Below, one piece after another: positions 17,694 to 17,784 of a stretch of DNA of 64,000 nucleotides. Numbering within the stretch: the stretch's first letter is position 1; every line of letters starts with the position of its first letter. The stretch is from the sequence record MK327931.1, one strand, 5' to 3'. The translations under genes and the position numbers were made by a program. The notes under the pieces are model-generated. The model saw only the letters and a list, made by a program, of their open reading frames with translations. It was not told the DNA's origin and did no database searches.

Positions 17694-17784
17694 CGAAAGA
17701 GGTGGGATTTGAACCCACGAAGCGTTATTTCTAACACTTGCTCGCTTAGTAGGCGAGTGCAATCAACCGCTCTGCCACCCTTCC
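17694..17784 (-). tRNA. trnS: tRNA-Ser with unusual ACU anticodon
   Basis: Type II long variable arm, G73, anticodon arm CTCGC-CTACTAA-GCGAG. Confidence 0.85.

Follow-up and report, generated by a model that had tools for sequence, protein, structure and literature searches.

The tRNA genes of T4-type phages (Arg-UCU, Gly-UCC, Ile-CAU, Ser-UGA, Thr-UGU and others) are among the closest described counterparts of the tRNA cluster that we analyzed in a 64,000-nt stretch of sequence record MK327931.1 (hereafter, the window). In both cases a small cluster with an early-type promoter is carried by an AT-rich lytic coliphage, most of the tRNAs read A-ending codons that the phage uses often and E. 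coli seldom, and some of the genes do not encode CCA and depend on its addition. However, the anticodons of the T4-type sets are also used by cells, whereas one gene of the present cluster specifies ACU, an ANN anticodon of a split codon box. Such anticodons were listed as universally missing, with phages explicitly included, in a 2021 review (PMC8007984). The unmodified-A34 tRNAs of Mollicutes, together with Leu(AAG) and Thr(AGU) of some Firmicutes, are likewise natural exceptions to the avoidance of A34 (PMC8007984), but they serve four-codon boxes, in which promiscuity is harmless, whereas ACU belongs to a box that serine shares with arginine. The same anticodon has been given to engineered orthogonal tRNAs for AGU reassignment, which work on E. 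coli ribosomes; in an E. coli S30 extract, an orthogonal tRNA with the ACU anticodon outperformed the GCU variant on AGU (PMC6158751). Those tRNAs were synthetic, unmodified transcripts with non-serine cargo, and AGA and AGG were removed from the templates as a precaution (PMC6158751).

Two tRNA types found in cells are also close to the tRNA encoded here. Like tRNA-Ser(GCU), in the form of either E. coli serV or the type found in phage PBECO4, it has a long variable arm, G73 and the U36-A37 context, belongs to the AGY box and occupies the same phage promoter slot. On the other hand, it carries A34 instead of G34, its body is only 58–61% identical and groups with UCN-type serine tRNAs, and it would be expected to read AGU rather than AGC by Watson-Crick pairing. 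With E. coli tRNA-Arg(ACG) it shares A34 in a C-U-A-C-N-A-A loop, and 14 of the 17 positions of the anticodon arm are identical to those of argQ (CUCGG-CUACGAA-CCGAG). It differs from this tRNA in that U36 breaks the TACG core, in its serine identity, and in that an inosine at position 34 would cross a split box.

ARAGORN called a tRNA-Ser with the anticodon act at 17693–17784 on the minus strand, and the Rfam tRNA model (RF00005) matched 17694–17784 over model positions 1–71 of 71 with a score of 49.9 bits (E 1e-8; gathering score 29 bits). Read on the minus strand, the 91-nt class II gene has an acceptor stem of 7 bp (G1:C72 to G7:C66) in which pairs 2:71 and 6:67 are G:U, a D arm that includes C11:G24, an anticodon stem CUCGC/GCGAG enclosing the loop C32-U33-A34-C35-U36-A37-A38 (17746–17752), a long, base-paired variable arm with an 8-bp stem and a GAAA loop, and a standard T arm. 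A34 corresponds to position 17750, which is a T on the plus strand. The free-energy fold (−29.7 kcal/mol) recovered the acceptor, anticodon, variable and T arms. The discriminator 3' of the acceptor stem is G73 (17694), as in bacterial tRNA-Ser; class II tRNAs for Leu and Tyr have A73. CCA is not encoded, since G73 is followed by CAAAUUUC, and the next tRNA gene lies 8 nt away. These results confirm the presence of an intact tRNA-Ser(ACU) gene, and the CU-ACU-AA loop, the long arm and G73 noted in a preliminary description of this DNA were all found. Among the determinants reported for E. coli SerRS (G2:C71, A3:U70 and C11:G24), A3:U70 and C11:G24 are present in the tRNA, and 2:71 is G:U instead of G:C. 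This replacement counts against the functional reading that we favor below, in which charging is a prediction.

Three jumbo myoviruses of the genus Asteriusvirus, the Escherichia phages vB_EcoM_G17, phAPEC6 and Sharanji, are 100% identical in this region, and the phage is thus a jumbo E. coli phage of the G17/121Q group. The near-identical G17 record was used for genes beyond the window; G17 coordinates minus 62,000 give window coordinates. The identical 91-nt gene is present in 18 phage records from various laboratories and countries, which represent 17 distinct phages (121Q appears twice), and in several of these records the flanking 501-nt stretches are only 93.7–97.6% identical. The GenBank record of G17 already labels the gene tRNA-Ser(act). 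A sequencing or assembly error that conceals a true GCT anticodon might be suspected, as the more distant relatives PBECO4, A4, BF17 and SD-15_S21 have a Ser(GCT) gene behind the same promoter. However, that gene is a different sequence (58.5% identity), four phages carry both genes, and X1, a further public run (probably DNA), yielded a contig over 17684–17823 with no difference at 17750 among the differences shown. Because 18 independent records are identical and the GenBank annotation agrees, an error is virtually excluded; the comparison with orthologs, which had been proposed as a way to refute the ACT anticodon, found ACT in 18 relatives.

Unlike tRNA-Ser(ACU), the Ser(GCU) gene of the sister phages encodes CCA, and the two have different acceptor, anticodon and variable stems. 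tRNA-Ser(ACU) shares 60.6% identity with E. coli serV and 63.8% with the phage's own Ser(UGA), the closest body among those compared. A tree of 130 phage serine tRNAs with the anticodon masked was weakly resolved; in it, 34 of 35 ACU tRNAs grouped with all 34 UGA-type bodies, while 45 of 52 GCU tRNAs fell outside; 4 to 14 origins of ACU can be counted on this tree. The body had been described as being of the Ser(GCU) type, which is wrong. Ser(ACU) and Ser(GCU) occur together, approximately 900 bp apart, in the phages ph0011, Turkey3, JP4 and WPEC3, and we therefore rejected the possibility that the gene is a G-to-A mutant of a resident GCU gene, given an identity of about 59%. An origin from GCU by point mutation was rejected as well, because the identity between phage GCU and ACU tRNAs never exceeds 76%. 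A blastn search of 5,426 complete E. coli genomes for a host origin gave no match to tRNA-Ser(ACU). Klebsiella RaK2-like relatives have the GCU type. In Turkey3, a gene for an HNH homing endonuclease lies between Ser(GCU) and Ser(ACU), and the promoter of the latter is kept; overall, the tRNA slots of Asteriusvirus look like exchangeable cassettes that are shuffled around homing endonucleases. This Turkey3 locus (L202:2190-3424) comprises Ser(GCU), the HNH gene, the identical Ser(ACU) with its promoter, and CAU and Asn tRNAs of a third type.

A promoter scan identified a sigma-70-type promoter on the minus strand at 17795–17823, TTGACT-17-TAAAAT with TG before the -10 hexamer (10 of 12 consensus positions), which stops 10 nt upstream of the 5' end of tRNA-Ser(ACU). 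Turkey3 has this promoter element in front of Ser(ACU), and PBECO4 has it in front of Ser(GCU). The tRNA-Ser gene is followed by a 90-nt tRNA with a CAU anticodon and an extra arm (17596–17685, minus strand; ARAGORN, Rfam 50.3 bits, fold), 8 nt downstream, and by tRNA-Asn(GUU) (17519–17591, minus; ARAGORN, Rfam 70.3 bits), the third gene of this run. In total, ARAGORN called seven tRNA genes, each of them on the minus strand of the window. The others, all called by ARAGORN and Rfam, are tRNA-Thr(UGU) (15934–16007), tRNA-Arg(UCU), the cognate reader of AGA, which a serine tRNA with A34 or I34 might misread (19214–19290; 62.7 bits), the phage's other serine tRNA, tRNA-Ser(UGA) (19295–19384; 60.4 bits), and tRNA-Gly(UCC) (20104–20176). 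The whole tRNA complement of G17, and likewise that of PBECO4, is exactly seven genes within this cluster. The G17 set consists of Thr-UGU, Asn-GUU, the CAU tRNA, Ser-ACU, Arg-UCU, Ser-UGA and Gly-UCC, and Ser(ACU) is therefore the sole AGY-reading tRNA of this phage.

Codons were counted (18,101 in total) over 108 non-overlapping window ORFs, and a 50-kb sample of E. coli K-12 was analyzed likewise. In the window ORFs, AGT occurred 405 times (22.4 per 1000) and AGC 57 times (3.1 per 1000). AGT is thus the commonest serine codon (33% of serine codons), and the AGT:AGC ratio of 7.1:1 is the highest T:C ratio among all NNY boxes. The E. coli sample showed the reverse, with 8.8 AGT and 17.2 AGC per 1000 (AGU:AGC 0.51), so that AGU is clearly more frequent in the window ORFs than in the host sample. 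The codons matched by the phage's other tRNAs for A-ending codons are each 2- to 3-fold commoner in the window than in the sample: ACA (22.4 versus 7.2 per 1000), AGA (9.2 versus 3.7), UCA (20.1 versus 6.6) and GGA (11.8 versus 5.7). AUA is 4.5-fold commoner (15.0 versus 3.3 per 1000), which is relevant only if the CAU tRNA is Ile2. These contrasts between phage and host fit tRNA-Ser(ACU) into the classical pattern of codon compensation, with one departure, namely that the demand for AGU would be met by a Watson-Crick anticodon. The performance of the engineered ACU tRNA on AGU (PMC6158751) gives this direct published support. The overall interpretation in the preliminary description thus stands as far as the matching of AGT-rich codon use to the ACU anticodon is concerned, and fails for the GCU-type body. 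An AGTACT motif that had been taken as a further sign of codon use sits in the promoter spacer and is unrelated to it.

The consequences of A34 depend on its modification. E. coli TadA targets the A in the UACG core of a YUACGAA heptaloop (PMC5630033, PMC12255301), and the editing of hokB was abolished or nearly so by single substitutions at other positions of the motif (PMC12255301). Of the 1,751 A>G mismatches collected from 72 species, 571 were at TACG sites versus 18.5 expected, while TACT sites showed no A>G excess (11 observed versus 16.2 expected; PMC12255301). The loop CUACUAA matches YUACGAA at six of seven positions, and the mismatch is at position 36 (U instead of G). In agreement with the point made on TadA in the preliminary description, the UACG that E. 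coli TadA requires is absent from the loop of tRNA-Ser(ACU). We found no TadA encoded by the phage, but did find two genes with a CDA fold. One product is a T4 Cd-like dCMP deaminase of 163 aa (PDB 1vq2, E 7e-35); the other is a 122-aa protein (HAE...PCxxC) without a match in PDB or NCBIfam. Both genes are also present in PBECO4, which has GCU and not ACU, and they consequently show no correlation with ACU. Because the loop is without the G36 of the TadA motif and no phage TadA was found, A34 is most likely unmodified, and AGU is most likely read by Watson-Crick pairing. Among the contigs from public RNA runs, none of clearly RNA origin spanned position 17750.

The alternative, conversion of A34 to inosine by host TadA or a different deaminase, is in our estimate unlikely. 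The tRNA would then read AGU and AGC and possibly AGA, which would place serine at arginine codons. The near match of the loop and of the anticodon arm to those of tRNA-Arg(ACG) speaks in favor of this alternative, as do the uncharacterized 122-aa CDA-fold protein and the observation that 25–30% of the sites edited upon over-expression of TadA deviate by one base from TACG (PMC5630033, PMC12255301). For these reasons, low-level editing of A34 may occur. However, G36 belongs to the very core that editing requires, the 122-aa protein is shared with the GCU-bearing PBECO4, and misreading through an I:A pair would be costly given the heavy use of AGA, which amounts to 9.2 per 1000 in the window ORFs and 15.5 per 1000 in other ACU-bearing phage loci. 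Misreading of AGA by an I34 form is possible in principle, and we consider it unlikely. Beyond the window, the phage has genes for a CCA-adding enzyme (PF01743, 374 aa) and for the two CDA-fold proteins; the former is in line with tRNA genes that do not encode CCA. The entries for the CCA-adding enzyme, deaminase and CDA-fold genes are located at L027 (G17 245073-245435), L021:1405-1896 and L022:1492-1860.

Our preferred reading is that the gene specifies a functional phage serine tRNA that reads AGU through a Watson-Crick A34:U3 pair. We put its probability at about 60%, on the basis of the integrity of the gene, its promoter, its conservation, codon usage, recurrence in phages (described below) and the lack of a phage TadA; the course that we propose for its expression, charging, A34 modification and decoding is the following. 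Host RNA polymerase would transcribe the Ser-CAU-Asn run, with tRNA-Ser(ACU) first, from the strong sigma-70-type promoter, and RNase P and 3' trimming would release the tRNA. Addition of CCA would fall to either the host or the phage CCA-adding enzyme, and host SerRS would charge the tRNA through its long variable arm and acceptor end and not through the anticodon. A34 would be left unmodified, the loop being without the G36 of the TadA motif, and the tRNA would supply the phage's commonest serine codon, AGU, which the host presumably reads only by G:U wobble of tRNA-Ser(GCU). The rare AGC codons would be left to the host tRNA. Since a change of base 34 would not affect charging, ACU would be possible in serine and not in other split boxes. 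Unmodified A34 can also read C and, weakly, purines, as is known from Mycoplasma and Salmonella, and decoding restricted to AGU is therefore an approximation.

To place the gene among phages in general, we searched IMG/VR viral contigs for a serine D arm combined with the loop CTACTAA; the counts of pattern matches are conditional on this D arm. The pattern with ACT matched 62 loci, 61 of which were called tRNA-Ser(act) of 87–92 nt by ARAGORN. These 61 genes reduce to 35 distinct sequences, which fall into at least 25 clusters with less than 85% identity between them, and every cluster representative displayed has G73. The same D-arm pattern with CTGCTAA matched 98 loci, and ACU and GCU occurred in a single locus only once among the IMG/VR loci. 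Many of the Ser(ACU) genes are located in large tRNA arrays of up to 27 genes as the lone AGY reader beside Ser(UGA), and phage tRNA sets that are nearly complete often have Ser(ACU) as their single AGY reader. When 80 loci were instead chosen by the presence of Ser(UGA), a less biased sampling, 12 had GCU and 1 had ACU. The preliminary description had treated the gene as a one-off; these results show a recurrent phage trait instead. A search for cultured relatives of the metagenomic ACU tRNAs yielded only candidates, with matches of approximately 77–82% identity.

In cells, the picture was different. A scan of one genome per species, covering 185,579 bacterial and archaeal species (596 Gb), gave 13 matches to the ACT pattern, of which only two are genuine tRNA-Ser(ACU) genes, both on contigs of metagenome-assembled genomes (MAGs): one from Burkholderiaceae (L200) and one from Tenericutes (L194). 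The Tenericutes gene is nearly identical to a gene on a viral contig (L051), and it is probably phage DNA that was binned into the MAG. We rejected the other 11 matches, Phytoplasma included, as ARAGORN did not call them tRNAs; ten are unrelated sequence, and one, from a Clostridia MAG (L192), looks like a truncated tRNA-like fragment.

These data also bear on the possibility that the gene is a nearly neutral or decaying relic that AT-biased mutation pushed to ACU and that has little role in translation. The two G:U pairs in the acceptor stem, the missing CCA and the Rfam score, which is modest in comparison with 60–70 bits for neighboring tRNAs, could be taken as signs of decay, and sister phages manage with GCU. 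However, the gene is identical in 18 genomes in which the surrounding 501 nt vary, its strong promoter has been kept, and at least 25 distinct phage lineages have the same anticodon in intact cloverleaves, usually as the sole AGY reader. Furthermore, the best GCU relative of any ACU tRNA is only 76% identical, which argues against recent decay by point mutation, and Asn tRNAs, which face the same mutational bias, are practically devoid of A34. We consider a relic very unlikely.

The Asn comparison was made with like-for-like patterns in IMG/VR, which gave 0 matches for ATT versus at least 119 for GTT. Similarly, among 1,470 tRNAs from 222 phage loci, the ratio of A34 to G34 was 7:293 in the Asn, Asp, His, Tyr, Cys, Phe and Ile boxes. 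These two controls indicate that it is in the serine AGY box specifically that A34 is tolerated or selected. The anticodon is read by AsnRS, AspRS, TyrRS, CysRS and PheRS but not by SerRS, and a serine-specific A34 fits with SerRS ignoring it. In its broader form, our reading makes tRNA-Ser(ACU) a phage-specific isoacceptor class and a natural exception to the ban on split-box ANN anticodons, widespread in AT-rich phages and practically absent from cells, possible only in serine because SerRS ignores the anticodon, and acting as a decoder dedicated to AGU with an unmodified A34. We regard this broader proposition as evenly balanced. In a stronger version of it, host TadA would partly deaminate A34, so that AGA would be touched as well.

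A few other putative A34 tRNAs were seen in phage clusters (L045 and other IMG/VR loci): three each of Asp(AUC), Thr(AGU) and Ser(AGA), and single Cys(ACA), Asn(AUU), Tyr(AUA) and Phe(AAA). Ile(UAU), an anticodon that to our knowledge is generally absent from bacteria, accompanies Ser(ACU) in several large phage arrays (IMG/VR L029, L033, L047, L048 and L075). This combination suggests that phage tRNA sets favor exact Watson-Crick readers of A- and U-ending codons.

We also compared ACU-bearing with GCU-bearing phage loci. The two groups have equal GC content, and the median AGT fraction was 0.75 for ACU and 0.72 for GCU loci (p = 0.39; GC-adjusted effect 0.013 ± 0.021), so that the proposal that ACU phages are more AGT-biased than GCU phages was rejected. 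Codon bias consequently accounts for AT-rich phages having an AGY tRNA, but not for the choice of ACU over GCU. The proposal that Arg(UCU) more often accompanies ACU in order to guard AGA was not supported either, as it was present in 18 of 62 ACU loci and 28 of 80 GCU loci, which is no difference.

The equal AGT bias leaves room for selection of ACU by something beyond codon use. One candidate is immune evasion, in which the tRNA would be a nuclease-resistant stand-in for host tRNA-Ser(GCU) through its changed wobble base and foreign body whenever a host defense or the toxin of a competitor cuts the host tRNA, so that the benefit would not lie in codon supply. Phage tRNAs are known to escape anticodon nucleases by changes in the loop (PMC10264068), and the exchange of tRNA slots like cassettes beside a homing endonuclease gene would be in line with this idea. 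However, a literature search found no nuclease specific for tRNA-Ser(GCU), mycobacteriophages reportedly carry Ser(GCU) precisely because it is not targeted (PMC10264068), and base 34 is the sole difference between the ACU and GCU loops. Evasion therefore has, in our view, a small chance of being the correct explanation.

Our literature search, with subscription journals outside its scope, found no prior description of a phage Ser(ACU). The gene itself is already annotated in GenBank, and the recurrence of Ser(ACU) in phages appears to be undescribed. The serine results run against the view of textbooks and reviews that split-box A34 is missing from all genomes. Should RNA data confirm the tRNA, E. 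coli phages 121Q and G17 would provide a natural, genetically tractable case in which the effect of an unmodified wobble adenosine on the bacterial ribosome and the extent of AGA misreading could be measured. The same case could be used to probe why TadA spares this A34 and why cells avoid A34, and to determine the payoff of Watson-Crick reading of a U-ending codon when the host covers the C-ending one. There is also practical interest for sense-codon reassignment, in which ACU tRNAs are already in use.

Several neighboring tRNA genes have features of their own. The CAU tRNA (17596–17685, minus strand), which is labeled tRNA-Met, has a 4-bp extra variable arm, a D loop without GG, the T loop UUAGAAU, and A73 followed by an encoded CCA; a CAU anticodon on a class II-like body is unusual. 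In sister phages this slot is occupied by an ordinary CAU tRNA of 76–79 nt, and one record names the long form tRNA-Ile. Copies of the long form with 78–84% identity are present in Erwinia phage Kaldavass and in Xanthomonas phages XbC2 and XaC1. The Rfam match to tRNA-Gly(UCC) at 20105–20176 (minus strand) scored 41.7 bits with one non-canonical pair in the anticodon stem, and that to tRNA-Thr(UGU) at 15935–16007 (minus strand) has one non-canonical pair in the T stem. The slot of the G17 Arg(UCU) gene (19214–19290 in the window) is another that differs between the G17 and PBECO4 clades: the tRNA that PBECO4 carries there (record positions 210838–210916) scored 29.3 bits, compared with 62.7 bits for Arg(UCU).
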